64,000 nt of DNA from Leidyana gryllorum EB-2025a (Eukaryota > Protista > Apicomplexa). Positions 20,306-61,144 of the stretch are shown piece after piece. The DNA lies in NCBI GenBank assembly GCA_048772705.1, contig JBLWGC010000230.1, forward strand, positions 248,001 through 312,000. The letters run 5' to 3'. The position numbers and the translations under genes are program-made. A model generated the notes under the pieces. The model did not search any database. It saw only the letters and a list, made by a program, of their open reading frames with translations, and was not told the origin of the DNA. The stretch's first letter is position 1, and every line of letters begins with the position of its first letter.

Positions 20306-21739
20306 TCAATTGGACTCGAGTTCTTCGAATGGCGGGCTGTCGGCTGGGCGCATGCCCCATTTGGTCACAGCTCCCGCAATCAAACCGACAGCTGCCGCGC
20401 CTCCAACAGTAACTCCAACAATCAATCCCACGGGCGCACCCTCTTCGTTGATGGTGGTATGAGGCGGGGGAGTGGACGAGCTCGTGTTGCTGCCACCCCC
20501 ATTGTTGTTGTTTCCGTCTTCATCACTGTTTCCGTCTTCATCACTGTTTCCGTCTCCGTCGCTGTTTCCTCCTCCAGGAGTAGTGTTCTTTTCGTCGTCC
20601 TCGTCGGTGGCTCCATTGTTGTTGTTGTCGTCGCCATCACTATCGGGTTCGGTTGTCTTCGAGTTGTTGTCTCCGTCGCTGCCCCCGTCTACGTCACTGC
20701 CCCCGTCTCCATCGCTGTCACTATCTCCGCCGTTAGCGGCACAAACTTCACCGAGGTAGCGACTCAAAATGTTTTGAATCGCTGCTTTCAACTTGAGCTC
20801 CGGTTCATCAACTGGGGTCAAAGAGTTGTCGGGGTAGAGTTCCAATGGTGTCAGTCTAAAGTCCAGATCGTTTGCAGCATTGAAGTTTGGATTGCAGGTC
20901 GCGTCGGGGTCCGAGGGGTGGAAGTCATCAGGATCGCAGCTCGTCTCAACTTTGTACTGTTGTTTGTACAGCTCTCCCATCCACCAAGTCCACAGGTCAT
21001 TAGCCTGCCGTTGCTCTGAAGGTGTGACTCCTGGCGTAACGAGAATGGTTGCCACATTGATCTTTGCGTCCAATATTTGATTCCTGAGAGTCGCGGTATT
21101 TGGGTATGTTCGGGTTTTACAATCCTCCTCCTCGTCGTCCCAGTATGTGTTATCGTGAGTGATGGTCGGACAGTTTGATGCGGACTCGCAGGTCGTAGGC
21201 GACCAACTCTCGCCATAAGCTCTGGTGTTGGTGATGTGAATAACAATACGGGCGCGCTCGAACTTCTCGGTCGCCTCGTTGTACACTGGCTCTGTCCAGC
21301 CTATCTCGGGGTGGATCACGCTGTACAGAAGCCCATAAAAGTTGCTGTCGGGCGCATCGCGTCCGCCGGTGTGCAAGTAGTTGCGCAACGTTTCACCAAC
21401 GGCACCAACTTCTTCGACTCCCACCAAGGGCCAGTCAACCTTCGCGCAATAGTCTTCCTCGTTTCCCATCTCCTTGATTGGCTTGTCTCTGAATGTGATC
21501 AAGCCGACTTTGCTCTGAGGATTTGTGGTTTCCAACTCGTCCATAATGTCTTTCAGTACGGCGCCGGTTTTCCCTACGTAGCCCTCCAACTCAATGGCTG
21601 TCTCGACCTTCTCTCCATCGAGCTCAGTCAGAACAAAGGAAGTGACATCATGAACTAACACTAGTTCAACTGGGACCCCACATTCGGCCCCGGAGACAAT
21701 AGCAGTTCCAACCAAACTTCCCAGCAGTAATGTCCTCAT
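20306..21739 (-). CDS. Intronless type I membrane protein with one integrin-beta-I-like vWA domain, an acidic G/D/N/S stalk, a TM helix and a short acidic tail
   Basis: Signal peptide MRTLLLGSLVGTAIVSGA. vWA motifs CGVPVELVLVHDVT, KVGLITFRDKP, GGRDAPDS, IGW and ARIVIHITN. TM VGLIVGVTVGGAAAVGLIAGAV. Tail KWGMRPADSPPFEELESN. Confidence 0.85.
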   Translation of the reverse strand: MRTLLLGSLVGTAIVSGAECGVPVELVLVHDVTSFVLTELDGEKVETAIELEGYVGKTGAVLKDIMDELETTNPQSKVGLITFRDKPIKEMGNEEDYCAKVDWPLVGVEEVGAVGETLRNYLHTGGRDAPDSNFYGLLYSVIHPEIGWTEPVYNEATEKFERARIVIHITNTRAYGESWSPTTCESASNCPTITHDNTYWDDEEEDCKTRTYPNTATLRNQILDAKINVATILVTPGVTPSEQRQANDLWTWWMGELYKQQYKVETSCDPDDFHPSDPDATCNPNFNAANDLDFRLTPLELYPDNSLTPVDEPELKLKAAIQNILSRYLGEVCAANGGDSDSDGDGGSDVDGGSDGDNNSKTTEPDSDGDDNNNNGATDEDDEKNTTPGGGNSDGDGNSDEDGNSDEDGNNNNGGGSNTSSSTPPPHTTINEEGAPVGLIVGVTVGGAAAVGLIAGAVTKWGMRPADSPPFEELESN

Positions 21740-21874
21740 CTTCTTGATGTTCCCGAAAAGTAAGCGAGATCTGTCTGGGCCAGCAACTCGAAACCCCAAC
21801 ACACACAAATGTTTCTTTCACTTTGGATCTCAGATCCCAACTAACTCACTCAATCCAGCAACTACCTCGTTTTC

Positions 21875-21915
21875 TGGTGGTGGTGGTGGTGGTGGTGGTG
21901 GTGGTGGTGATGATG
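21875..21915. repeat. (TGG)n microsatellite followed by (TGA)3
   Basis: About 11-12 perfect TGG units read directly, about 135 bp upstream of the ATG at 21739. Confidence 0.95.
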
Positions 21916-22203
21916 AGAGTAGGACAGCTTGCTAACTCGATAAGCTTAAGTGTTGAGGCGCCGTTAAAATGAAAGACCGAACAAGTCAACAGCACGCACG
22001 GTCACCACCCAGTGTAGTCTGACACAACATGGAGTCAGACGTTGAAACTTGCACCATCTGCGCGCTGGTGGTTTCATGACCGACTGCAAACTTAGCCAAA
22101 AACATGATGGACAGCGAATGTGATAGGTACCAATTAGTCTATCGATCACTCGGTTGGAATTAAACCATCACAACCCTCTGTCCACCACACTCATTTCGTT
22201 CTA

Positions 22204-25200
22204 TCATTCCGTATTCTCAATTAAAACCTCATCGTCGAGAAACTCATCCCCGCCAGTCCATCGACTGTAAGATAACGCCGCCACTCCTATGCCAGCCAGA
22301 CCCACACCGGCCACGGCACCCAAAGTGGAACTCAGAATTACCGCTAGACTCCCATCAACCTCGTCAATCACAGTCTGTATCAATGTCCGATACGCCCCGG
22401 TATATGTGGTCGACGTGGTCGAAGCTTGATCAGGATCGGTAGTCTGGGTGCTGTCACCTCCATCGGAATCGGTACTTCCTCCATCGCCTCCCGCCGGGTC
22501 CGTACGTGAACCTTCGTCGGTACATCCGCCCTCATCGGAATCACTGCATTCACCATCCGGATCCGTACAGTCACCATCGCCTCCCGCCGGCTCGGTACAA
22601 GCACCTGGATCGGTACATCCGAGATCGGGCTCGGTACTTCCACCATCATCGGGATCGGTGCCTACAGGATCGGTACAAGCACCTGGATCGGTACATCCGA
22701 GATCGGGCTCGGTACTTCCACCATCATCGGGATCGGTGCCTACAGGATCGGTACAAGCACCTGGATCGGTACATCCGAGATCGGGCTCGGTACTTCCACC
22801 AGCATCGGGATCGGTGCCTACAGGATCGGTACATCCACCTTCGTCGGTACAAACATCATCATCGGATTGGGTACTTCCACCATCTGGATCAGTGGTCGCT
22901 GACGTCGTCTCTTCTTCAGTGTCTTGAGAGAAGTCAGGAGTCAGAGTCCCGGTCATACAAACAGACTCGTGGGCTGTATCGATGAAGTCTCGGAGTAACT
23001 GTGTGGCCTCAGGACAGTACTCCTCCGGACAGAGCATCAATTGAGAACGACTCTGACCCAGGTGATCGGTCAATAGAGATGTATAGATGTCCGCTGCTCG
23101 TTGGTCAACGCGGCCACCGAACTCCGCGACCGCATTGAGACGAGAAACTACACAGGCATTAACCTCTTGGTCATCACCCACAATCGAGCCATATGTAGCC
23201 CGATCTGGAACCGGCTCCACTGGGACCAGCAAGACGCCGAGGTTTATGCCGTTGTTTAGCAAAGATTCTGCGACTTCCGTAATCTTCGGATACTCATAAG
23301 TTGAACACTCCTCATCCCATCCAGCCCAAAGACGATCTCGGGCAAACCACTCCTTCCCCGGGAAGACGTTATAATCGGTGTAGAGGACTGCATCGCCGTC
23401 CTGATGCGGTGGTGAATCTGTGACCAAAATCACATAACGAGCTGTCGTATGGCCTGGAGACGTGGGTTTATTCTCAACTCGCCGCCAGTTCACTCCTGGG
23501 TCCCGTGCAGCACCCATAAGGGCCACCCACTGGGCTTCGGACATATCACAACCACCTTCGGAAGCGAGAGATCGCATTACATCCGGCAGCCGAGAGTATT
23601 GCGATGTCAGAGGGACAGTCAAGTCACCACAGGTGTCCGTAGTGGTACCCAGATTGGGGACTGGTTTGTCCTGGAATGACAACAGCCCAACATTGCTGCC
23701 GGGATGAGTCTCCTCAATATAATGCAGAAGACCTTCTACCGAAGCCGCCACATTATGGATGGTAGTCTGGAGACCCGACGTGATATCTTGAACGATCAAC
23801 AGATCAATGGGCCCGTTGGTACACGAAATGTCTACTTCTTCCTCGGTTGTGGGATCAACGATCTCCTCCTCAGTGGATCGGGAGAAATCTAAAGTCAGTG
23901 TACCGCCCTCCTCGGTATCAAAAGTCGTCACTGCCGACATCGTTTCGTCACTCCCAGTGGAACTCTGTGGCGACATAGTCTCGTCAGTCTCGGTGGTACT
24001 CAGTGTCGACGTCGTCTCCTCTGTCTCAGTGGTACTCAATGTCGACGTCGTCTCCTCTGTCTCGGTGGTACTCAGTGTTGACGTCGTCTCGCCAGTCTCG
24101 GTGGTACTCAGTGTCGACGTCGTCTTGCCAGTCTCGGTGGTACTCAGTGTCGACGTCGTCTCCTCTGTCTCAGTGGTACTCAATGTCGACGTCGTCTCCT
24201 CTGTCTCGGTGGTACTCAGTGTTGACGTCGTCTCCTCTGTCTCAGTGGTACTCAATGTCGACGTCGTCTCCTCTGTCTCGGAGGTACTCAGTGTCGACGT
24301 CGTCTCGCCAGTCTCGGTGGTACTCAATGTCGACGTCGTCTCGCCAGTCTCGGTGGTACTCAATGTCGACGTTGTCTCCTCAGTCTCGGTGGTACTCAAT
24401 GTCGACGTCGTCTCGCCAGTCTCAGTGGTACTCAACGTCGACGTCGTCTCGTCAGTCTCGGTGGTACTCAATGTCGACGTCGTCTCGCCAGTCTCGGTGG
24501 TACTCAATGTCGACGTCGTCTCCTCTGTCTCGGTGGTACTCAGTGTCGACGTCGTCTCCTCTGTCTCAGTGGTACTCAATGTCGACGTCGTCGCCTCTGT
24601 CTCGGTGGTACTCAGTGTCGACGTCGTCTCGCCAGTCTCGGTGGTACTCAGTGTCGACGTCGTCTTGCCAGTCTCGGTGGTACTCAGTGTCGACGTCGTC
24701 TCCTCTGTCTCAGTGGTACTCAGTGTCGACGTCGTCGCCTCAGTCTCGGTGGTACTCAATGCCGACGTCGTCTCCTCTGTCTCAGTGGTACTCAGTGTCG
24801 ACGTCGTCGCCTCAGTCTCGGTGGTACTCAATGCCGACGTCGTCTCCTCCGTCTCATTGGTGGTCAGTGGCGACGTCGTCGCCTCAGTCTCGGTGGTACT
24901 CAGTGTTGACGTCGTCTCCTCCGCCTCAGTGGTAGCTGGGGTGGTGGGCAGCTCGTGTATGGTGGTCCCCGCTTGCGAAAGAGCGGGTTTCTCCGTGTAG
25001 TGATGGGTGGTGACTACCGGTTCGGTTGTAACCTCTAGCTCAGTCGGTTGAGAGAAGTCCGGGGTTGGTGTTCCACTGGAACAAACAGCCTCGTGGGCGC
25101 GGTCAATGAAGTTTTGCATCAGGTGAAACGACTCAGGACAGTTGTCTTCAGGGCAGAGGAAAAGATAGGGATCCTCTTGACCGATTCCGCCCCTAAGTAA

Positions 25201-28200
25201 CCAATCGTAAGTGTTGATGATTGCATTTGGGATGTTCCTCTCCGTAGTTGTCCTGGAATTCTCCTTGGCTATGACACACACATTGCGTTCGTTGGCCTCC
25301 ACTGGGTCGGCGCTTCGCACCATTGACGGTACGAGTAGAACACCCAAGTTGATGCCGTTGTGCTTTAACGCAGTAATGAGGTCCCACACGTTCGGATACT
25401 CATAGTTCATGCACTCGTCATCCCAATCACTCCAGAGATGAGATCGAGTTTTCCATTCTTTCTCTGGATACAGTCCGCGATCAGTCACGGTAGTGGCTTC
25501 TCCTTCGAGATGTGGTTGGGCATCGGTAATGAGGAGAGCATATCGAGCTGTGGTGTGAGTAGGCTTGGTAGCGGGGACCTCGACTCGTCTCCACTCCACG
25601 TCAGGGGAGCGGGCGGTTCCCATCAACGCAACGTATTGACTTTCTGGCAAGTCACAACCTCCGTAACACAGAAGTTCCCTCATCTTCTTTGGTACTTCAG
25701 ACGAGTCTCCGGATAAGATGGGAACGTCCACTTGCCCACAATGGTCAACGGTGGTGCCCATATTAGGAATGGGTTTGTCTTTGAACGATACGAGACCCAC
25801 TTTGCTCCCTGGATGTGTGTCTTCCAGATAATCAATGAGTTTCTCCAACGACCGAGCGATATTGGCATTCGTTTCCTGAAGGCCAAGAGTGGTATCCAAG
25901 ACTATCATAAGATCAATAGGGCCATCGTCACACCCTTCTCGGGGATCAACATAGTCGCTGCTGCCGATGTCTGCGGGAGGGGTCGTTGACGGTGATACAT
26001 TTCCATTTCCACCTCCAGCTCCACCGTCGTCCTCAGTTGTCGTGCCGTCTCCGCCATCGGCCCCACTGTCTCCCTCACTAGTCGTGCCGTCTCCGCCATC
26101 GGCCCCACTGTCTTCTTCGTTAGTCGTGCCGTCTCCGTCGTCGGCCCCACTGTCTTCTTGGTTAGTCGTGCCGTCTCCGCCGTCGGCCCCACTGTCTTCT
26201 TCGTTAGTCGTGCCGTCTCCGCCATCGGCCCCACTGTCTTCTTCGTTAGTCGTGCCGTCTCCGCCGTCGGCCCCACTGTCTTCTTCGTTAGTCGTGCCGT
26301 CTCCGCCATCGGCCCCACTATCTTCTTCGTTAGTCGTGCCGTCTCCGCCGTCGGCCCCACTGTCTTCCTCATTAGTCGTGCCGTCTCCGCCGTCGGCCCC
26401 ACTGTCTTCTTCGTTAGTCGTGCCGTCTCCGCCATCTCCGCCAGAGCCACCATCATCAGTGGAGGGCTCATATGTGGACCACTCTGCAGTGAGCGTAGTA
26501 TCACTGCTGGAGTGGTCGGTTGTTGCTCGATCGGTGGTACTCAAGAGGGATGAAGAGCTCGTTTCTGGTGTTGGTACGTCGGTGGCGGTCAGGGTAGTTT
26601 CTTCGGTGGTGTCGGAGTCCAAGATTGATGATGAGGACGACAGATCTGTCGTCTCTGATGTAGTTTCAGAGGTATCCATTCCGGTAGTGCTACTCTCTTT
26701 CCCATCAGATGTGCTCGAGTCCGCTGTCGAGGAGGTCTCGAAAGGTGTCGTTGTGGTGTCGGCATCAGTGGTGGTGGTCTCCAGAGCAGTAGAGTGCGTG
26801 AGGGAGTGAGTGGTAGTCAGCTCGGTTGTGGTGGTTGGATCCTGAGTGGTGGTTGTAGGTTCAGTAGGTTCAGAAGGTTGGGAAAAGTTTGGTGTTGGCG
26901 TGCGATCCTCATTGCGGCAAAAGTCTGTGTGGGCTCGTTCTATGAATTCAGCGACTCTGGCCGTTCCTTCGGGACACTCCATGGTTTCACAGGTGAAGAG
27001 GTATAGCTGGTCTCCCTGTCCCAGCCAGCTCCGAAGTAGCCAATCGTAAGCTGCCACCGTGCTGGGGTCAACACGGGGTTCGAGTGGGGCTCTCATAAGA
27101 GCTGCTTGCATACATTCGTGAGATTGCCGGTCGCTGTAGCTCCTGCTCTCCATTTGCAAGCGTGCCTTACCCTGTTGGGGCACCACCAGAACTCCCAACT
27201 TGACACCATTGTGAAAGAGGGACTCTTGAACCTCAACCAATGATGGATACTCGTACTCGTGGCACTCGGCCTCTTCTCCACCCCAGATTAGACCATTCCG
27301 GTCTTTCCAGGTTTTGTCCTTGAACTGTTCCAGTTCTTTATTCTTGTGGGCGGTCGCAGAGAATTGATTGTTAGAGGGTCCGATATGCGGCTGGTCATCG
27401 GTGATGAGTAACATGTAGCGACCAGTAGTATGTTGGGGAGAAGTTGCGGGCACTTCCAAGCGGCGCCAGCCGACATCGGGATCACGAGCCGCTCTCAGCA
27501 TTGCCATGTATTGTGCCTCCCAACTGTCACAACCGCCAGAACACAATAGGCCATCCATCCGGTCCAAAACTTGACCGAAGTCAGCAGTCAGAGGAACATC
27601 GAGTTTGGTGCAGTAGTCTACCACAGTACCCATCTCAGGGACGGGTTTGTCCTGAAAACTGAGCATTCCGACTCGGCTACCGGGATGAAACTCGTCGAGG
27701 TAATCCATAAACGCGGCCAGAGACTCAATTAGGTTGTCCTTGACTTCTTGTAAGCCCATAGTGGCGTCTTGTAGAATCATGAGATCAATCGGGCCGCGCT
27801 CGCAATCGTCGTTGATATCGAATGGCAGTGACAGAGCTTTCTCGCGAAGATCGCGCTGAAAGGGGAGGGTGATGGGAGGTTGGGCGTGCGGTAGCCCAGT
27901 TGCAGTGGCATCTGGAACCGCGCGAGTAGCGTCGTCGAATAGAAGTGATTCGTGATTGAAAATGATTTGCTCATCGAAGCGGGTAGGCCGCTCAGCCTCT
28001 AATAGGGGCAAAGGCGGGCGTTTGATATCACTATTGAATTGTGACGGTATCCGATGCACTTCAAAATCGTCCGAGGAGCGAGCATTTGAGTCGGCAATAC
28101 CTGCATTGAGTCGCTCAGGGTGTCCTTCGGACGAGAAGTTGCAATAAACGGATTCCCAGTCTGTCAATAAATCTACCAGTGCGTCGCGACAATCAGCCCT

Positions 28201-28902
28201 GGAGCATCGCGCGAGAAGAGACATGGGGTCAAAGCCCATCCGTGTCAATAGGTGTCTCCAAGCGCGTTCAATGGATGCGTCTGCGTCACTGGAGAGCAGA
28301 ATAGCTGGAACAATACGTCCAGTATGTAGGGAAGAAGCAACCTGGGAAAGCTTCTCAAGGGTGTCATACTTTGTGCAGGGGTTCGAAAGTTTTCTAAGGG
28401 CGTTGTGATCATTGGGGTTCAATAGTAGGGAGTGGCCGCTCAGATCTGGCGCCGAACTTGTAATAAGAACAGTCAACCTGTTGTCCAGCTGCCAGCCCAC
28501 TCGATCATCCTGCGACCCCACAAGAGCCGTGAGATGACCAGTGTCTGGGCCACTCCCTCCACGGGTGCGAAGAGAAGTGTACGATCTTCGATGGAGAACA
28601 TCATTCCATGGAATCAGAGGTGTCTCCATCAGCATGCAGTCATCATTGCCAGAAGGTAATGTGTCGTTATGTTCTGATCGGAAGCCCAACAGGCCCAGCC
28701 GTGAGTGTGGGTGCCTTTCGACTAGATGAGCTCCAAAGTCAATAAGATCCCGCTCCATCGTCTCGAGTGTCCGCTCCATGCCAGCACTCAAATCTTGCAA
28801 TAACACAAGATCGACTGAAGCGCGGCATCCAATATCAGGAGCAATAAAGGGAGCCCCGTAGATTGGGCTCACTCCGAGCAAAGTTGGTAATATCAACTTC
28901 AT
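22204..28902 (-). CDS. Intronless 2232-aa surface adhesin: signal peptide, four integrin-beta-I-like vWA domains separated by mucin/acidic repeat spacers, TM helix, acidic tail
   Basis: Domains begin CRASVDLVLLQDLS, CERGPIDLMILQDAT, CDDGPIDLMIVLDTT and CTNGPIDLLIVQDIT. Domains 2-4 share VGxxSFxDKP, GGCDxxExQ, VxWRR, LxTDxxPH and YEYP. TM AVILSSTLGAVAGVGLAGIGVAALSY. Tail SRWTGGDEFLDDEVLIENTE. Confidence 0.92.
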   Translation of the reverse strand: MKLILPTLLGVSPIYGAPFIAPDIGCRASVDLVLLQDLSAGMERTLETMERDLIDFGAHLVERHPHSRLGLLGFRSEHNDTLPSGNDDCMLMETPLIPWNDVLHRRSYTSLRTRGGSGPDTGHLTALVGSQDDRVGWQLDNRLTVLITSSAPDLSGHSLLLNPNDHNALRKLSNPCTKYDTLEKLSQVASSLHTGRIVPAILLSSDADASIERAWRHLLTRMGFDPMSLLARCSRADCRDALVDLLTDWESVYCNFSSEGHPERLNAGIADSNARSSDDFEVHRIPSQFNSDIKRPPLPLLEAERPTRFDEQIIFNHESLLFDDATRAVPDATATGLPHAQPPITLPFQRDLREKALSLPFDINDDCERGPIDLMILQDATMGLQEVKDNLIESLAAFMDYLDEFHPGSRVGMLSFQDKPVPEMGTVVDYCTKLDVPLTADFGQVLDRMDGLLCSGGCDSWEAQYMAMLRAARDPDVGWRRLEVPATSPQHTTGRYMLLITDDQPHIGPSNNQFSATAHKNKELEQFKDKTWKDRNGLIWGGEEAECHEYEYPSLVEVQESLFHNGVKLGVLVVPQQGKARLQMESRSYSDRQSHECMQAALMRAPLEPRVDPSTVAAYDWLLRSWLGQGDQLYLFTCETMECPEGTARVAEFIERAHTDFCRNEDRTPTPNFSQPSEPTEPTTTTQDPTTTTELTTTHSLTHSTALETTTTDADTTTTPFETSSTADSSTSDGKESSTTGMDTSETTSETTDLSSSSSILDSDTTEETTLTATDVPTPETSSSSLLSTTDRATTDHSSSDTTLTAEWSTYEPSTDDGGSGGDGGDGTTNEEDSGADGGDGTTNEEDSGADGGDGTTNEEDSGADGGDGTTNEEDSGADGGDGTTNEEDSGADGGDGTTNEEDSGADGGDGTTNQEDSGADDGDGTTNEEDSGADGGDGTTSEGDSGADGGDGTTTEDDGGAGGGNGNVSPSTTPPADIGSSDYVDPREGCDDGPIDLMIVLDTTLGLQETNANIARSLEKLIDYLEDTHPGSKVGLVSFKDKPIPNMGTTVDHCGQVDVPILSGDSSEVPKKMRELLCYGGCDLPESQYVALMGTARSPDVEWRRVEVPATKPTHTTARYALLITDAQPHLEGEATTVTDRGLYPEKEWKTRSHLWSDWDDECMNYEYPNVWDLITALKHNGINLGVLLVPSMVRSADPVEANERNVCVIAKENSRTTTERNIPNAIINTYDWLLRGGIGQEDPYLFLCPEDNCPESFHLMQNFIDRAHEAVCSSGTPTPDFSQPTELEVTTEPVVTTHHYTEKPALSQAGTTIHELPTTPATTEAEETTSTLSTTETEATTSPLTTNETEETTSALSTTETEATTSTLSTTETEETTSALSTTETEATTSTLSTTETEETTSTLSTTETGKTTSTLSTTETGETTSTLSTTETEATTSTLSTTETEETTSTLSTTETEETTSTLSTTETGETTSTLSTTETDETTSTLSTTETGETTSTLSTTETEETTSTLSTTETGETTSTLSTTETGETTSTLSTSETEETTSTLSTTETEETTSTLSTTETEETTSTLSTTETEETTSTLSTTETGKTTSTLSTTETGETTSTLSTTETEETTSTLSTTETEETTSTLSTTETDETMSPQSSTGSDETMSAVTTFDTEEGGTLTLDFSRSTEEEIVDPTTEEEVDISCTNGPIDLLIVQDITSGLQTTIHNVAASVEGLLHYIEETHPGSNVGLLSFQDKPVPNLGTTTDTCGDLTVPLTSQYSRLPDVMRSLASEGGCDMSEAQWVALMGAARDPGVNWRRVENKPTSPGHTTARYVILVTDSPPHQDGDAVLYTDYNVFPGKEWFARDRLWAGWDEECSTYEYPKITEVAESLLNNGINLGVLLVPVEPVPDRATYGSIVGDDQEVNACVVSRLNAVAEFGGRVDQRAADIYTSLLTDHLGQSRSQLMLCPEEYCPEATQLLRDFIDTAHESVCMTGTLTPDFSQDTEEETTSATTDPDGGSTQSDDDVCTDEGGCTDPVGTDPDAGGSTEPDLGCTDPGACTDPVGTDPDDGGSTEPDLGCTDPGACTDPVGTDPDDGGSTEPDLGCTDPGACTEPAGGDGDCTDPDGECSDSDEGGCTDEGSRTDPAGGDGGSTDSDGGDSTQTTDPDQASTTSTTYTGAYRTLIQTVIDEVDGSLAVILSSTLGAVAGVGLAGIGVAALSYSRWTGGDEFLDDEVLIENTE
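22590..22850 (-). repeat. 78-bp coding tandem repeat (GSTEPDLGCTDPGACTDPVGTDPDDG), about 3 copies
   Basis: Near-identical 26-aa Cys-containing units in the membrane-proximal stalk of the 2232-aa protein. Confidence 0.9.
23975..24930 (-). repeat. 36-bp coding tandem repeat (TTSTLSTTETEE), about 26 copies
   Basis: Unit gtggtactcagtgtcgacgtcgtctcctctgtctca repeated head-to-tail with point variants and no spacers. Confidence 0.95.
26040..26440 (-). repeat. 42-bp coding tandem repeat (GDGTTNEEDSGADG), about 9-10 copies
   Basis: Unit gtcgtgccgtctccgccgtcggccccactgtcttcttcgtta repeated head-to-tail. Confidence 0.95.
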
Positions 28903-29716
28903 CGTTCACTATACAGACGGCGAGCAGTCAATGCAAGTAGCTGGTTTGGACAGTGCACGAAAAACAACAAAATGGGAGGGTCAGCAGCTCTCCAGCAGTA
29001 TGTCTATTCCAGCAGCCTCTTAAATCACCTTATTGGCGATTTGCACACACACTTATATCGGCGTCTCCAGCCGCGTCCCACTCCTTCACGCCAATGCAAC
29101 CCGTCGCTCTCTCTATCTGTCAGCTCACTAGGGAGACCTCTCATCTAATCTCTGCTACAGTCCTTGTCGGTCTTTGCCAATGTTAACCAAGGCACCAAAG
29201 TTTGACTCGTGACGATTTTTGTGAATGTCGATCGGTTCATCACTGACTGCTGAACTCGTCAACAATAAATCTGCGCTGTGACGAGAATATATGAATCTTC
29301 GAATGAAGCACACTAAGGGGAGTAGAAGGAATCGCCAAAAAAGCAGTTGCTTCAGATAAGCCTCTCCTCAACAATATCAACAACGGCCCCGCCCCTCCCA
29401 GCGAGACAGAGAGGGCGGCAACAACCAGTCCTGCCTGTTATTCACAAGCTGCAACGGTGTGCCGGTGATAGTTCCAGAGATAATGAGATTTGAAGAGTGT
29501 TGTGTGCTTTCGACTGGTCGCCAATAACTTCTACGACCGAGCCAACTTGAGAGTCGAACAACGACTCAAAAAGACCGTTGGAAAGAAGAGTATGAGAGAA
29601 GCAGAGTGTACAGGAGAGTCAATAACAGAAGAAGAGTAAGTATAATGGTGCATTCGACGGCACACTTTGATAGATCGCGCGCTTTTCCGTACAGGAAGCA
29701 TTAGACTGCTCCAAAC

Positions 29717-30919
29717 TCAGATAGCGGGTTTCACGACAGCGCCGTTGCGGCCAATGGTAACAACCCACCACCAAGTGCCGTAACCCGGGAAGGTGGTGGC
29801 AGCTCTGTGCATTGGGCTCAGAGTAGTGACGTGGGTGTCGGCAACTGCTACGGTGTCTTTCTCGGCCTCGCCAGACAACTTTTCGACAGCTATCGGCAGG
29901 GCCTCAGCAACTGCCTCTTGATTACGGCCAATTGTGAACCACCAAATGGGGCTGGAGCCATATCGCGGGGCGTGGTAGAGCGGTTGAGTAGTGGTACTGT
30001 CAGCAACGGCGGGAACAGGCGCGTGCACGTGGGCACCTCTCACGGGGAACACCCACCACCAAGTATAAGAGCTGTCCGCCAGCAATGCCGGAGCATGGGT
30101 CGGCTGCTCCGTTTCTCTCTCAATCACGGCTTCTTGATTTACCAGAACCATCGCTGTCGAGGTTTCGGAAGCTCCATTGTCATGCAGAGCAGCAGAGTGC
30201 GCGGAAGCTTCTGCCTTTTGGACATAAGTCTCAATAGTTTGCACAAACTTGTGCGCAAATCGACTGCATTCACGCTCGCACTTGCCTTTCTGGATGACCG
30301 GAGCAGCATCATCTTGGTCCGGTTTCATCAGCAATACTGCAACACCGATATCCTTTTCGAGCAATTCAGATTTGACAAACTCTGGAGCCGGAGCGGGCAG
30401 CTGGTCGCAAGGAGCTTCCCATGCCGCCCAAGCGTCCTCTCCGCCGGCTGATACGAGCGGCGCATCGTTAGCAGCATTCGCGTCGGATGCCGGGAGATTG
30501 CTGGTAAGGGCCAATACCAATCGAGACCGATCTTTCTCTTGGCTCCACTGGATATTGCCGCGGTCGTAGGCTACACTCATAACAGCTTTGAAGTAATCAT
30601 CACTGTGCTTGTGCCCGCCGAAAGCCAATGAATGCTTCAAGCTTGCTTTATGTGTCTTCCAATGGGTCATCGGCGCCAAGGAGGCGCTGAGCTGTACGCA
30701 AGAGTCTTTCGAATCCGCGCCACTCATTCCGATAACGCCCAACTTCGAGTCGGGATGTACAGTATGTAAATAGTCAGCAATGTAAGGTATACTGGAGCTC
30801 ACGCCTTCCCAAACGGGCTCCATCACATTTGATGTATCCATGAGGAGTACAATGTCGAGCGGGACAGCTGCGACGGCAGAGGCGCCGATCGCGGACCAGA
30901 AAACTGGAGTGCGCATCAT
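29717..30919 (-). CDS. Intronless secreted protein with a degenerate integrin-beta-like vWA domain and C-terminal Trp-rich repeats
   Basis: Signal peptide MMRTPVFWSAIGASAVAA. Motifs VPLDIVLLMDTS, HPDSKLGVIG, IQW and SRLVLALTS. The C-terminus has YTWWWVFPVRG, PIWWFTIGRN and YGTWWWVVTIGRN. Confidence 0.8.
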   Translation of the reverse strand: MMRTPVFWSAIGASAVAAVPLDIVLLMDTSNVMEPVWEGVSSSIPYIADYLHTVHPDSKLGVIGMSGADSKDSCVQLSASLAPMTHWKTHKASLKHSLAFGGHKHSDDYFKAVMSVAYDRGNIQWSQEKDRSRLVLALTSNLPASDANAANDAPLVSAGGEDAWAAWEAPCDQLPAPAPEFVKSELLEKDIGVAVLLMKPDQDDAAPVIQKGKCERECSRFAHKFVQTIETYVQKAEASAHSAALHDNGASETSTAMVLVNQEAVIERETEQPTHAPALLADSSYTWWWVFPVRGAHVHAPVPAVADSTTTQPLYHAPRYGSSPIWWFTIGRNQEAVAEALPIAVEKLSGEAEKDTVAVADTHVTTLSPMHRAATTFPGYGTWWWVVTIGRNGAVVKPAI

Positions 30920-57849: not shown

Positions 57850-59331
57850 ATGTTAAGGTTCTCTGCTCTACAGACGCTTGGCGCAGTGATGCTCTCGCAT
57901 CCTCTTGGCGCTTACGGGTACAACCACGCGACCCAAGCGGCTTGCGGGCAAGCAATTGACATATTGTTCCTTCAAGATACTACTCAAACATTCTATGCCG
58001 ACCTGCCGGTAGTGTTGCGTCAGCTGCCGGAAATCTACTCCTCAGTGTATGAGATGTTCCCAGGATCACGTTTCGGCGTGGCGGAGTTCAAGGACAAGCC
58101 CTTTTATCCTTTGGGTTATCCGGGACATGACTACTGCTATCGTCTGGTTTCGCAAGCTCTGACCACCGATCTGATCTCATTGATGGAGGACTACGGCGAG
58201 TTGTACGTGTCTGCCGGCGGCGATCTGCCTGAGGCTAGTTATCAGGCGTTGATTAATGCCTGTTACGATAGTCGTGTGGGATGGAGAGAGTTTGCTGGTC
58301 CAGAAATCGACGTCACGAAGACAGCAGCACGTATTATCGTGCTTGTCACTGATGCAAGCCCTCACTTTGAGGGTGACATGGCGAAGTATCCGAATGATGT
58401 CCCTCAGCTACCCAAGAATCCAGGTGGCATTTGGCAGGATGCCTTTGATGACTTCTGTGCTACATACGATTATCCTCACTTCAATCAGGTTGTGGATGCG
58501 GTTAACGACCAACAAGTGGCTGTCATTTTCCTGGTTCGTAACGACTCTCAAAACTCATTCTCGGCGTGGTCTTGGTTCAACTCTTACCTCGGACAGCCTG
58601 CTGACATGATTCAACCGCTGAGTGATGATCCGACCGAGTTCACAGAAGCCTTGATTCGAGTCCTTACGTACATAGGCAATGATCAATGTATCACCACGAC
58701 TACGACTACGACGACGACCACAACCCCGACAACCACGACTCCGACCACAACGACAACTCCGACCACCACCACCACCACCACCACCACCACCACCACCCCG
58801 ACCACAACAACAACGACTACCACAACTGAGTCCACCGCTCCCGCTCTCCCGACTACGGAGCCGACGCCCGAGCCGACTACCACTGAGTCGACCACTACTG
58901 AAGCAACGACCACCACCACCACGACTGAGCCCACTACCACGGAGTCAACCACTACGGAGTCGACCACTACCGAGTCGACCACCACTGAACCGACGACCAC
59001 CACTACGTCTACCACTTACCGGACGGAGAAGACAACGACCGTGACCGATCCGATTGTGTGGGACACCTTCCCTACTGAAGGGACTGCTGCCCCTGTCGGA
59101 ACTGAGGGGCAAGTGACCCGACCCCCTGCCCCCCAAACGAGCCCTGCTGAGGGAGGAGACGGCGATGGGGAAGGCACTACAAAGAAGCACTGCCGCCATA
59201 AGGAGCGCTGCAGTAATGATCTAATAATCAATATCCCTCAAGGCAACAAAGAGTTCGCTTTGAATCTGAACGCCGCCCACGCCCTGGAGTGGAAAGATGT
59301 GAGATTGGCTCATCCAGATGCTGCTCTGTGA
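57850..59331 (+). CDS. Intronless secreted protein with an integrin-beta-I-like vWA domain and a Thr-rich mucin stalk
   Basis: Signal peptide. CGQAIDILFLQDTT, RFGVAEFKDKPFYP, SAGGDLPEASYQAL, VGWR, ARIIVLVTDASPHFEGD and YDYP...VIFLV follow the integrin beta I-domain motif order. Poly-Thr stalk. No obvious TM helix. Confidence 0.9.
   Translation: MLRFSALQTLGAVMLSHPLGAYGYNHATQAACGQAIDILFLQDTTQTFYADLPVVLRQLPEIYSSVYEMFPGSRFGVAEFKDKPFYPLGYPGHDYCYRLVSQALTTDLISLMEDYGELYVSAGGDLPEASYQALINACYDSRVGWREFAGPEIDVTKTAARIIVLVTDASPHFEGDMAKYPNDVPQLPKNPGGIWQDAFDDFCATYDYPHFNQVVDAVNDQQVAVIFLVRNDSQNSFSAWSWFNSYLGQPADMIQPLSDDPTEFTEALIRVLTYIGNDQCITTTTTTTTTTTPTTTTPTTTTTPTTTTTTTTTTTTPTTTTTTTTTESTAPALPTTEPTPEPTTTESTTTEATTTTTTTEPTTTESTTTESTTTESTTTEPTTTTTSTTYRTEKTTTVTDPIVWDTFPTEGTAAPVGTEGQVTRPPAPQTSPAEGGDGDGEGTTKKHCRHKERCSNDLIINIPQGNKEFALNLNAAHALEWKDVRLAHPDAAL
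58693..59020 (+). repeat. Thr-codon (ACN)n low-complexity tract including a perfect (ACC)n run
   Basis: Encodes TTTT/PTTT/ESTTT repeats. Confidence 0.9.
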
Positions 59332-59522
59332 TGTGGTCAAACGAAGGTATCCATTGTTTTTCAGTTGTACTAGGCTAATCCCTTTTCGACGAGGGATTGT
59401 ACTGACTTTGAGCACTACCAGTATTGTGAGGAGCTCTTTTTTGTTCTAAAATGCAACAAAGGGAAACGCGATATCTATCGCTTAAGAGCCCGGAGAGAGC
59501 CCGGTATCAATTATCGCACACT

Positions 59523-59564
59523 TTGATTGGTGGCGCGCACACATTGATTGGTGGCGCGCACACA
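59523..59564. promoter_or_regulatory. Perfect 21-bp tandem duplication TTGATTGGTGGCGCGCACACA containing an inverted CCAAT box, upstream of the dipeptidase gene
   Basis: Two exact adjacent copies about 120 bp before the ATG at 59687. Confidence 0.6.
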
Positions 59565-59686
59565 GTAGTAATCGCGCTTGAAGGACTGTGAGGTGTCACA
59601 AAACTCAATTTTTTCACAGTGCTGTTTCGAATTCATCCGCTACTTATACTGTCACTACGGTCGGTTGCGTTACTTCACCTCACACA

Positions 59687-61144
59687 ATGAGCTACGACGC
59701 AGTTGTGAAAGATATTGATGCTCAAGAGGCTGAGTACATTGAGGTTCTGAGGGAAACATGTCGCATTCGCTCGTTGAGTGCTTCCCCTCAGCATCGGGGC
59801 GATGTGGTGAAGATGGCGGAATGGTTGAAGACTAAAATTGAGGCCGTTGCTCCCGGATCTACGGTCGAATTTATTCAACCTCCCTACAAACAAACTTTGG
59901 TGACCGGGGAGGAGTTGGACCTCCCCCCAGTGGTTTTGGCGACTATCGAGCCGGTTCATCCGAACAAACGTACTATCCTCGTATACGGTCATTATGACGT
60001 GCAGCCGGCCGAGATGTCCGATGGTTGGGATACTGATCCTTGGGACTTGGTGGAGTTGCCGAATGGCGAGATGCGAGGCCGTGGTTCAACTGACGACAAG
60101 GGACCCATTGTTGGTTGGATCAATATGATTAACTCTTACAGACGGGTCGGACGCGAATTGCCGGTGAATTTCAGATTTGTGTTTGAAGGCATGGAGGAGT
60201 CAGGCAGCATCGGTTTTGATGACACAGTGAAGATGGTGGCGGAGAAGAGTGATTTCTTCAAGAACATTGATTTCGCGGCTATCTCTGATAACTATTGGCT
60301 GTCTACTGTGAAGCCATGCTTGACGCACGGACTTCGTGGTCTTTGCTCGGTGCAAATTGAGATCACTGGTTTCAATGCTGATTTGCATTCAGGCTCCTTT
60401 GGTGGTTTGATGTATCAGCCAATGGATGACTTGATATATATGCTCGGGACAGTTAAGGACGAGACTGACAAAATCTTGATCGATGGCATAATGGATGAAG
60501 TGATGCCGATAACAGAGGAGGAGAAGGCTCGTTACAAAGATATCTACTATGACTTGGAAAAGGTGAAGAAGACCCAAGGCACCGTTCGTCTGCGTGACGA
60601 ACAGGACCTGACGAAGATGCTGATGAATGTATGGAGACTGCCGTCTCTGAGCATCCACGGTATTGAGGGGGCCTTCAGTGAGCCTGGCTTCAAGACGGTG
60701 ATTCCCCGTCGTGTGGTGGGCAAGTTCTCGATTCGATTAGTTCCAAACATGTCGATGGAGCAAGTCGAGAGAGTTGTTCGTCAATACTTGGAGAAGAAGT
60801 TCGCGGAACGCGACACTCCTAACAAAATGAACCTCGACATCCACTGCGGCCGTTGGTACTACGTGGAGCCTACTTCTCCAGTTTTCAGTGCTGCTGAGAA
60901 AGCTACTGTCCGCGTTCACGGTGTGAAGCCTGATTACACTCGTGAAGGCGGTAGTATCCCGATTACATTGACACTGGCTGAACTGACTGGACAGGATGTG
61001 GTGTTGCTGCCAATGGGCCGTGTGGATGACGGCGCTCACTCTCAGAACGAGAAACTTGACAAGTCAAATTACATGTTGGGTATGAAGACTTATGCTGCCT
61101 TCGCTGAAGAATTAGCTACCATTCCTGCCACTAAGAAGAACTAA
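59687..61144 (+). CDS. CNDP2: Cytosolic non-specific dipeptidase (M20 family, CNDP2/Dug1-like); intronless
   Basis: YGHYDVQPA, RGRGSTDDKGP, FEGMEESGS, ISDNYWL, DLHSGSFGG, PSLSIHGIEGAF, REGGSIPIT and DDGAHSQNEK. Confidence 0.95.
   Translation: MSYDAVVKDIDAQEAEYIEVLRETCRIRSLSASPQHRGDVVKMAEWLKTKIEAVAPGSTVEFIQPPYKQTLVTGEELDLPPVVLATIEPVHPNKRTILVYGHYDVQPAEMSDGWDTDPWDLVELPNGEMRGRGSTDDKGPIVGWINMINSYRRVGRELPVNFRFVFEGMEESGSIGFDDTVKMVAEKSDFFKNIDFAAISDNYWLSTVKPCLTHGLRGLCSVQIEITGFNADLHSGSFGGLMYQPMDDLIYMLGTVKDETDKILIDGIMDEVMPITEEEKARYKDIYYDLEKVKKTQGTVRLRDEQDLTKMLMNVWRLPSLSIHGIEGAFSEPGFKTVIPRRVVGKFSIRLVPNMSMEQVERVVRQYLEKKFAERDTPNKMNLDIHCGRWYYVEPTSPVFSAAEKATVRVHGVKPDYTREGGSIPITLTLAELTGQDVVLLPMGRVDDGAHSQNEKLDKSNYMLGMKTYAAFAEELATIPATKKN

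Follow-up and report, generated by a model that had tools for sequence, protein, structure and literature searches.

Stand-alone integrin beta-I-like domains in an expanded family of putative surface and secreted proteins of the gregarine Leidyana gryllorum

In the assembly of the gregarine Leidyana gryllorum EB-2025a (15.5 Mb, 237 contigs), contig C230 (JBLWGC010000230.1) carries a cluster of three consecutive open reading frames (ORFs) on the minus strand, intronless and without internal stops, whose products contain integrin beta-I-like domains. The stretch analysed, hereafter the window, spans 64,000 nucleotides (positions 248001-312000 of C230), and coordinates given without a contig refer to it. 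The cluster occupies 20306-30919 and its genes are named g1, g2 and g3; g7 is a fourth member elsewhere in the window. By sequence and by predicted fold, the domains of the cluster are integrin beta-I-like. The proteins that bear them are not integrins, having neither the integrin scaffold nor an alpha partner. They are part of a larger family, about 47 genes strong, which in our view probably encodes extracellular beta-I-like binding proteins.

Relatedness within the window was assessed with an external profile, built from 14 foreign gregarine proteins without window sequences and run on the 54 window ORFs of at least 150 amino acids (aa). It matched g7 (E 7e-98), domains 2 to 4 of g2 (about 1e-34 each), g1 (1.7e-19), domain 1 of g2 (5e-8) and g3 (3e-7), and no other of the 54 ORFs. 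Because the profile held foreign proteins only, the count of six domains in the three cluster genes (one, four and one) plus one in g7 is not circular. It bears out the preliminary description of this DNA, which had noticed six related vWA domains in three consecutive minus-strand genes and a seventh at 57850. The features are listed below; TM denotes a transmembrane segment, and the ligand table is the tabulation of metal-ligand positions described further on.

20306..21739, minus strand: g1, 477 aa from the first ATG, predicted type-I membrane protein (ORF, hydropathy/composition, external profile E 1.7e-19)
20915..21682, minus strand: beta-I-like domain of g1 (external profile and ligand table)
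20363..20431, minus strand: TM of g1, Gly/Ala/Val-rich, mean hydropathy 2.2
22204..28902, minus strand: g2, 2232 aa, predicted type-I membrane protein of the 'beads on a string' kind
28132..28827, minus strand: g2 domain 1, divergent, 24 bits with the external profile
26908..27801, minus strand: g2 domain 2, used for structure modelling
25072..25929, minus strand: g2 domain 3 (Pfam, external profile, ligand table)
22948..23820, minus strand: g2 domain 4 (Pfam, external profile, ligand table)
26039..26436, minus strand: repeat of g2 spacer 1, 9.5 copies of a 42-bp unit, acidic Gly/Asp/Thr 14-mer
23928..24934, minus strand: repeat of g2 spacer 2, 28 copies of a 36-bp unit, mucin-like Thr/Ser/Glu 12-mer, S+T about 0.67
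22592..22851, minus strand: repeat of g2 spacer 3, 3.3 copies of a 78-bp unit, Cys-containing acidic 26-mer without EGF signature
22207..22344, minus strand: Gly/Ala-rich TM (22273-22344) and acidic cytoplasmic tail (22207-22272) of g2, from hydropathy
29717..30919, minus strand: g3, about 400 aa, predicted secreted, no TM
30182..30871, minus strand: beta-I-like domain of g3, 21.6 bits with the external profile, N- and C-terminal Cys absent
57850..59331, plus strand: g7, 493 aa, predicted secreted, with signal-like N-terminus, beta-I-like domain and Thr/Pro stalk
57943..58698, plus strand: beta-I-like domain of g7 (Pfam, PDB sequence search, ligand table)

Each of the four proteins begins with a signal-like N-terminus, and the first domain starts at most about 10 residues after it, in agreement with the earlier claim that the domain is free-standing. 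In g1, the single domain leads into an acidic spacer of Asp/Gly/Asn/Ser, after which come the Gly/Ala-rich TM and 18 aa of acidic tail. The four domains of g2, the third and fourth of which share 54% identity, are split by three differing repeat spacers and followed by a TM and a 22-aa acidic tail. g3 combines one strongly degenerate domain with three Trp-cluster repeats. C-terminal TM segments are predicted in g1 and g2, and hydropathy and composition indicate neither a TM nor a glycosylphosphatidylinositol (GPI)-like end in g3 and g7, so that the proposed division into two membrane-anchored and two secreted forms holds. The mucin stalks proposed for the group are found in g2 and g7, which carry Ser/Thr-rich arrays, but not in g1, with its acidic spacer, or in g3, with its Trp-cluster repeats. 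These repeats make up the C-terminal half of g3 (29717-30181, minus strand); each consists of two or three clustered Trp followed by V/T-I-G-R-N, and the region has no Pfam match and no TM. At the C-terminus of g7 (59180-59331) and of its orthologues P0002-P0013, a conserved short module stands behind the Thr/Pro stalk, with two to six Cys and then a hydrophobic beta-like stretch. It has no Pfam match and could be an anchoring or oligomerisation piece of the g7-type secreted subfamily.

Pfam Integrin_beta (PF00362) is the leading match of these proteins. Whole g2 reaches 46.8 bits (4e-12; curated cut-off 24.8 bits) and g7 reaches 41.2 bits (2e-10) over profile positions 6-214 of 248, while domains 2 to 4 of g2 score 18.5-23.4 bits each when taken singly, slightly under the cut-off, and g3 scores 13.3 bits. 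The generic profiles VWA_2 and VWA_4 appeared only below threshold, together with one spurious MgtE_N match on g2 (E 0.06), and the window proteins matched neither PF00092 nor TSP_1. In a six-frame search of the whole genome, the VWA profile PF00092 likewise gave no match, whereas 11 of the 14 control genomes were positive. A phmmer search of the PDB with g7 matched 57 chains, all of them integrin beta. A family profile of 21 sequences aligned with integrin beta-3 (1.1e-13) over residues 110-351, the entire beta-I domain, and with Pactolus (7e-10); its best 60 matches were integrin beta chains or Pactolus and no others. The motif order had been read from the letters as that of the integrin beta I-like domain, and it aligns with beta-3 110-351 residue for residue. 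The suggested comparison of Integrin_beta with generic VWA profiles therefore came out in favour of the former.

Structure prediction points the same way. The AF2 model of domain 2 of g2 (pLDDT 83.5, pTM 0.87) retrieved only integrin beta among its top 50 Foldseek matches. In an exhaustive structural comparison (VIA) of the predicted models with 48,161 representative chains, this model aligned with integrins b6, b8, b7 and b3 and with Pactolus at Z 21.5-23.4 (208-229 residues, 2.2-2.7 A), as against Z of at most 16.1 over about 180 residues for other VWA domains (TFIIH p44, Rpn10, BatB, collagen, alpha-I), 14.4 for PfTRAP and 13.4 for PvTRAP. g3 is the most degenerate member, and its AF2 model (pLDDT 78.9) gave Z 16.2-17.9 with integrin beta and Pactolus versus at most 14.5 with other VWA domains and 12.5 with TgMIC2; PfTRAP, PvTRAP and TgMIC2 are thus mid-list structural matches only. 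An ESM-Atlas feature search returned mixed generic VWA clusters with scores of at most 0.92 and was uninformative. With integrin beta on top in the AlphaFold and Foldseek check, a best score to TRAP/collagen-type VWA domains, named beforehand as a refuting outcome, did not occur.

Integrin beta subunits contain further domains, and these are missing here. Pfam detected no hybrid, PSI, I-EGF or beta-tail domain on the window proteins. The beta-I-like domain is not inserted in a hybrid domain, and the stalks consist of low-complexity repeats (Thr/Ser/Glu, Gly/Asp or Cys-acidic) without Pfam match. Across the genome, PSI gave a single, non-significant match outside these proteins. FG-GAP (PF01839), searched in six frames over the 15.5 Mb, gave nothing significant (best E 0.09, below the cut-off), and the control genomes were positive. 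The integrin beta tail profile PF08725 also found no match in the genome, a result that is uninformative as its control matched nowhere. Neither NPxY nor NxxY occurs in the tails of g1 and g2 (18 and 22 aa). Pfam, tail inspection and the genome search thereby agree with the earlier statement that PSI/hybrid/EGF legs and an NPxY tail are absent. Contamination by a host integrin was considered and ruled out, the genes being intronless, without legs and present as 47 paralogs. Nor was any contig resembling human DNA encountered.

The metal ligands were mapped through the beta-3 alignment and tabulated for 51 domains of this genome and 74 foreign ones. The sites are the adhesion site that depends on metal ions (MIDAS), the site adjacent to it (ADMIDAS) and the synergistic metal-binding site (SyMBS); the assignment of residues to them is one that we take from established integrin structural knowledge.

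Profile positions 12, 14, 16: beta-3 D119, S121, S123, MIDAS
Profile positions 19, 20: beta-3 D126, D127, ADMIDAS
Profile position 51: beta-3 D158, SyMBS
Profile positions 91, 93, 95, 96: beta-3 N215, D217, P219, E220, SyMBS / MIDAS
Profile position 136: beta-3 D251, MIDAS

The elements D-x-[ST]-x-[ST], D51, D-x-P-E and T-D are retained in most of this genome's 51 domains and in almost all 74 foreign ones, and many have the D-D pair. Taken as a whole, the family, g7 included, has these ligands with Thr at the places of Ser. In g7 the metal site is intact (D-T-T-Q-T, D51, D-L-P-E and T-D). The cluster domains show various degrees of loss. The MIDAS stretch of g1 reads D-V-T-S and precedes an insertion; g1 retains D51 and D-x-P, and the equivalents of E220 and D251 are D and N, respectively. 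Domain 1 of g2 has D-L-S-A-G and has lost the equivalents of D158, D217, E220 and D251. Domain 2 has D-A-T-M-G with D51, D93, E96 and T-D kept, domain 3 has D-T-T-L-G with D51, D-x-P-E and T-D, and domain 4 has D-I-T-S-G with D51, D-x-S-E and T-D; the third MIDAS residue and the ADMIDAS pair are absent from all three. g3 has D-T-S-N-V and has lost the remaining ligands. Comparable decay was found in a Blabericola protein with five domains and in two anonymous proteins with two domains each.

The domains also have conserved Cys that occur in pairs. Of Cys 64 and Cys 176, 104 domains have both and 14 have neither, with a single mismatch; for the N- and C-terminal Cys the figures are 70 domains with both, 17 with neither and 11 mismatched. 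None of the four is found in the bacterial relatives. Two disulfides are proposed because of this pairing, and the pattern suggests that one spans the shortened specificity loop and the other forms an N-C clasp, as in vWF A domains.

The family is widely represented in the genome. PF00362 found 29 places and the family profile 51, corresponding to about 47 intronless genes with 51 domains (at least 30 bits) and 28,910 encoded aa. A signal-like N-terminus is present in 45 of the 47 genes and a Ser/Thr/Pro-rich stalk in 34; 12 have a C-terminal TM and 35 have none. A further member is located just outside the window, 4 kb upstream (C230:243902-244663). This genome-wide count of paralogs, which had been suggested as a check, upholds the expansion part of the claim that the family is expanded and lineage-specific. 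The domain type is not lineage-specific, since it has close relatives in bacterial RTX/Ig-repeat adhesins and in a springtail.

Many members stand in tandem arrays of near-identical copies, with six genes on C47, four on C104 and others on C33, C36 and C133. In the C104 array (C104:832000-841000, L009, four genes) three domains are identical, and the six genes of the C47 array (C47:44000-57000, L002 and L031) are nearly identical, which indicates recent amplification or gene conversion. In the TM subfamilies, acidic tails are conserved among paralogs and end in an aromatic residue. Tails of the type ..MFQ or ..DYS/..DYGG were observed at C51:151728-152249, C51:226593-227120 and C230:1020158-1020634, at C133:17500-35500 and at C104:438500-444000. 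Such conserved tails are candidates for binding a conserved cytoplasmic partner.

A FastTree phylogeny of 125 domains resolved the subfamilies, whereas 43 of its 120 branches were open, the deep nodes among them, and several long-branch warnings were raised. In this tree, g1, g2 and g3 fall together with a TM gene on C133 that has two domains; the first of these pairs with domain 1 of g2 and the second with domains 2 to 4. It follows from this pairing that a triplication of the second domain gave rise to g2.

Some members depart from the usual layout. At C221:1-2505 (minus strand, L021), a beta-I-like domain is fused to FAD_binding_4 (BBE-type oxidase) in a gene cut by the contig end, and the same oxidase fusion, with the BBE C-terminus, occurs in the anonymous metagenome proteins P0059, P0113 and P0121. 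This member may be a secreted oxidase that an adhesive head directs to its target. At C180:66478-77079 (minus strand, L014 and L029), an ORF of 3533 aa has one N-terminal beta-I-like domain, its other approximately 3170 residues being without Pfam match. The member at C204:17825-18511 (minus strand, L016) is a stalk-less protein of 299 aa comprising the signal and the domain only, and it has the best PF00362 score of the genome (70.8 bits). It is 55-57% identical to single proteins of four other eugregarine transcriptomes, making it the most conserved and most 'canonical' member.

Word-based homologue searches reached only close eugregarine relatives. The nearest named homologues (36-57% identity) are in the EukProt transcriptomes of Protomagalhaensia, Blabericola and two Gregarina species, which were made from hand-picked trophozoites (PMC8051059); relatives of the family are transcribed in trophozoites of these other eugregarines. 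Porospora cf. gigantea B has one two-domain member. A Logan contig (ERR10900127, L033) encodes a g7 orthologue of 76% identity and, behind it, the M20 peptidase that also follows g7 in the window (57850-61144), and this synteny at 76% identity indicates the presence of a close relative of this gregarine in ERR10900127. These homologues mark the organism analysed here as a eugregarine.

An exhaustive profile search retrieved 6365 proteins at E of at most 1e-3, 93 of them at 1e-30 or below. The best 150 of the 6365 were listed and 20 were looked up, many being anonymous metagenome proteins. Among those listed, the top non-gregarine matches are bacterial RTX/Ig/cadherin-repeat adhesins, springtail proteins and BBE-type FAD oxidase fusions. 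The RTX proteins are exemplified by Methylobacterium WP_269780293, and a Methylobacterium protein reaches 231 bits on PF00362. In the springtail Orchesella dallaii, proteins P0016, P0017 and P0066 contain 13, 10 and 4 beta-I-like domains and are encoded on contigs of 0.7-15.9 Mb. The Orchesella domains share the Cys 64/176 pair with the gregarines, whereas the bacterial domains do not; the likeness to the springtail may stem from shared ancestry, from transfer between the lineages of host and parasite or from convergence. Per domain, the gregarine profile gives 105-120 bits to bacteria, about 90 to the springtail and 54.5 to human beta-3, so that the family stands at least as near to bacterial beta-I-like domains as to animal integrins. 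A claim of horizontal gene transfer was rejected, the deep nodes of the tree giving no direction of transfer.

How these proteins might work can be outlined from the domain and its setting. The stand-alone domain behind the signal peptide would be the only globular module of putative surface or secreted glycoproteins, probably clasped by two disulfides, and would act as a putative ligand-binding head held off the cell on a glycosylated or acidic stalk. Since the canonical members have the complete integrin-type ligand set, most members would bind an acidic ligand residue through an integrin-like MIDAS/ADMIDAS/SyMBS metal cluster. The copies of the cluster have a degraded metal site, nearly all ligands being gone from domain 1 of g2 and from g3, and for that reason probably bind without metal, as Pactolus or vWF-A1 do, or serve as spacers or structural beads. 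The anchored g1 and g2 may use their acidic tails to link a bound substrate to the cortex and, by analogy with TRAP/MIC2, be shed within the Gly/Ala-rich TM. The soluble g3 and g7 would be deposited in the surface coat or in a mucus or gliding trail. We infer an adhesive role, whether in gliding, attachment, mucus or syzygy.

A number of observations weigh against this reading of the family as extracellular beta-I-like binding proteins. Taken alone, g1 and domain 1 of g2 have no Pfam match and g3 remains below the cut-off, these three being tied to the family through the external profile. The AF2 models were guided by family alignments and are predicted, not experimental, structures. In the cluster domains the MIDAS is incomplete, with its last Ser (the S123 equivalent) replaced, and an integrin-like metal mechanism may therefore not apply to g1-g3. 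The two disulfides are suggested by co-occurrence only, and signal peptides and TM segments were called from hydropathy only. The tails of g1 and g2 lack the penultimate Trp of TRAP-family tails, their Trp being membrane-adjacent.

Two other identities of the domain can be set against it. It is highly improbable that these are ordinary alpha-I-like VWA domains of the TRAP/collagen type, with a superficial resemblance to integrin beta. The weak sub-threshold VWA_2 and VWA_4 matches next to Integrin_beta, and the generic VWA clusters that come first in the language-model feature search, would fit such an identity, but PF00092 matches neither the window proteins nor the genome, the PDB sequence matches shown are all integrin beta or Pactolus, and integrin beta is ahead by 5-7 Z units and about 45 aligned residues. 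True integrin beta subunits, or the recent capture of a host integrin gene, are hardly conceivable either. Integrin beta is the best match in both sequence and fold; against this, the proteins are without hybrid, PSI, I-EGF, beta-tail and NPxY elements, the genome is without an FG-GAP alpha subunit, the gregarine profile favours bacterial domains over human beta-3 (105-120 versus 54.5 bits), and the 47 intronless paralogs are dispersed and have orthologues in several gregarine genera and in Porospora.

Narrower functions can also be considered. The TM-anchored members might replace TRAP/MIC2 as gliding adhesins, the head gripping the substrate while the tail engages the actomyosin glideosome, with rearward translocation and rhomboid release into the trail. 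This has in its favour a TRAP-like plan of head, stalk, Gly/Ala-rich TM and short acidic tail, the 12 TM members with paralog-conserved acidic tails ending in an aromatic residue, the genome without PF00092 VWA, the expression of the relatives' genes in gliding trophozoite stages and the precedent of Myxococcus CglD (bioRxiv 10.1101/2023.10.19.562135). We nevertheless regard it as unlikely, considering that 35 of the 47 members have no TM, that the g1 and g2 tails are without the penultimate Trp and their metal sites are degenerate, that the GAC connector is not detectable in several eugregarine transcriptomes (PMC9250747) and that eugregarine gliding may depart from the zoite glideosome model (PMC3849649). 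It is possible, if on balance doubtful, that the secreted mucin-like members form glycocalyx, mucous trail or cyst/oocyst wall and that the anchored ones mediate adhesion between parasites (gamont syzygy) and not to host or substrate. The Ser/Thr/Pro-rich stalks of 34 members and the absence of a TM from 35 agree with such a role, as do near-identical tandem copies suggestive of demand for a bulk product, the high transcript coverage tags in trophozoite assemblies, and the degenerate metal sites of multi-domain members, both in this genome and in Blabericola, which would suit cross-linkers or spacers; moreover, the composition of the eugregarine trail 'mucus' is unknown and an explicit open question (PMC3849649). 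However, most secreted members keep the full metal-ligand set across genera (55-57% identity for the C204 type), which favours specific ligand binding over bulk.

A broader proposal goes beyond the reading as extracellular binding proteins, and we advance it as a speculation with the odds against it. Eugregarines would lack TRAP-type VWA adhesins and would have in the stand-alone beta-I-like family, anchored and secreted, their main means of adhesion in gliding, attachment or syzygy, and the secreted mucin-type members would be the protein component of the gliding 'mucus' trail. The domain would have been acquired independently of the amorphean integrin machinery, either in an exchange with bacteria or with hexapod hosts or by inheritance from a stand-alone adhesin older than integrins. 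If true, this would mean that the beta-I module has served in adhesion among eukaryotes outside integrins as well.

Among apicomplexans, gregarines form the group that is both largest and least studied, and they are the reference point for the evolution of gliding and host attachment; to our knowledge, their adhesins are essentially unknown. The gregarine homologues are already tagged by routine Pfam annotation. The literature on the genomes and the attachment of gregarines, on extracellular proteins of chromerids and on the origins of integrins, covered incompletely as regards journals, does not mention integrin-beta-like proteins in gregarines or other apicomplexans. One genome-scale gregarine survey sought only TSP1-containing TRAP-like proteins (PMC9250747), and integrin surveys report integrin machinery in Amorphea only (bioRxiv 10.1101/2020.04.29.069435). 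A family of about 47 genes, conserved across genera, gives concrete candidates for gregarine adhesins and trail composition and bears on the distribution of the integrin module, adding a eukaryotic case outside Amorphea of a beta-I domain without an alpha subunit. It may be this parasite group's main, hitherto undescribed set of candidate adhesion proteins.

Compared with the beta-I domain of integrins (PF00362), the gregarine domain has the same fold variant, including the beta-I-specific insertions, and the same motif order, and most family members have the equivalents of D119, S121, S123, D126/D127, D158, D217, P219, E220 and D251. It differs in its shorter specificity loop, in the probable N-C clasp and the 64/176 Cys pair, and in the Gly that replaces N215. 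The TRAP/MIC2/CTRP proteins follow the same plan of signal peptide, A-type domain(s), stalk, small-residue-rich TM and short acidic tail, and the four tandem domains of g2 recall the six vWA domains of CTRP. However, the TRAP family has an alpha-I VWA domain (PF00092), TSR and the penultimate Trp, none of which is found in the gregarine proteins. Sib, likewise a type-I adhesion receptor of a protist, resembles them in having a VWA head outside the cell, a stalk of repeats, a single TM and no alpha subunit; its tails carry NPxY-type talin-binding motifs, which are absent from the tails of g1 and g2, and PF24909 (Sib) found no match on the window proteins.

Free-standing beta-I-like domains are already known from Trichodesmium, Myxococcus CglD and Pactolus. 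Pactolus (PDB 2iue, Z 21.5) likewise has a beta-I-like domain without an alpha partner and without a functional MIDAS, but it is a vertebrate protein that derives from a complete integrin beta chain and keeps the legs, whereas the gregarine proteins stand on low-complexity stalks. Among the matches looked up, those from outside eukaryotes that come nearest to the gregarine profile are bacterial beta-I-like domains, at 105-120 bits per domain. The bacterial beta-integrin-like adhesins share with the gregarine proteins a domain free of integrin legs and the ligands D-x-S/T-x-S, D-D, D-x-P-E and T-D. Their domain lies amid RTX/Ig/cadherin-like repeats, and not on a mucin stalk with a eukaryotic TM and tail. 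Examples are the Trichodesmium beta-A protein, with a free-standing beta-I-like domain (PMC3192720), and Myxococcus CglD, a beta-integrin-like adhesin that acts in gliding (bioRxiv 10.1101/2023.10.19.562135).

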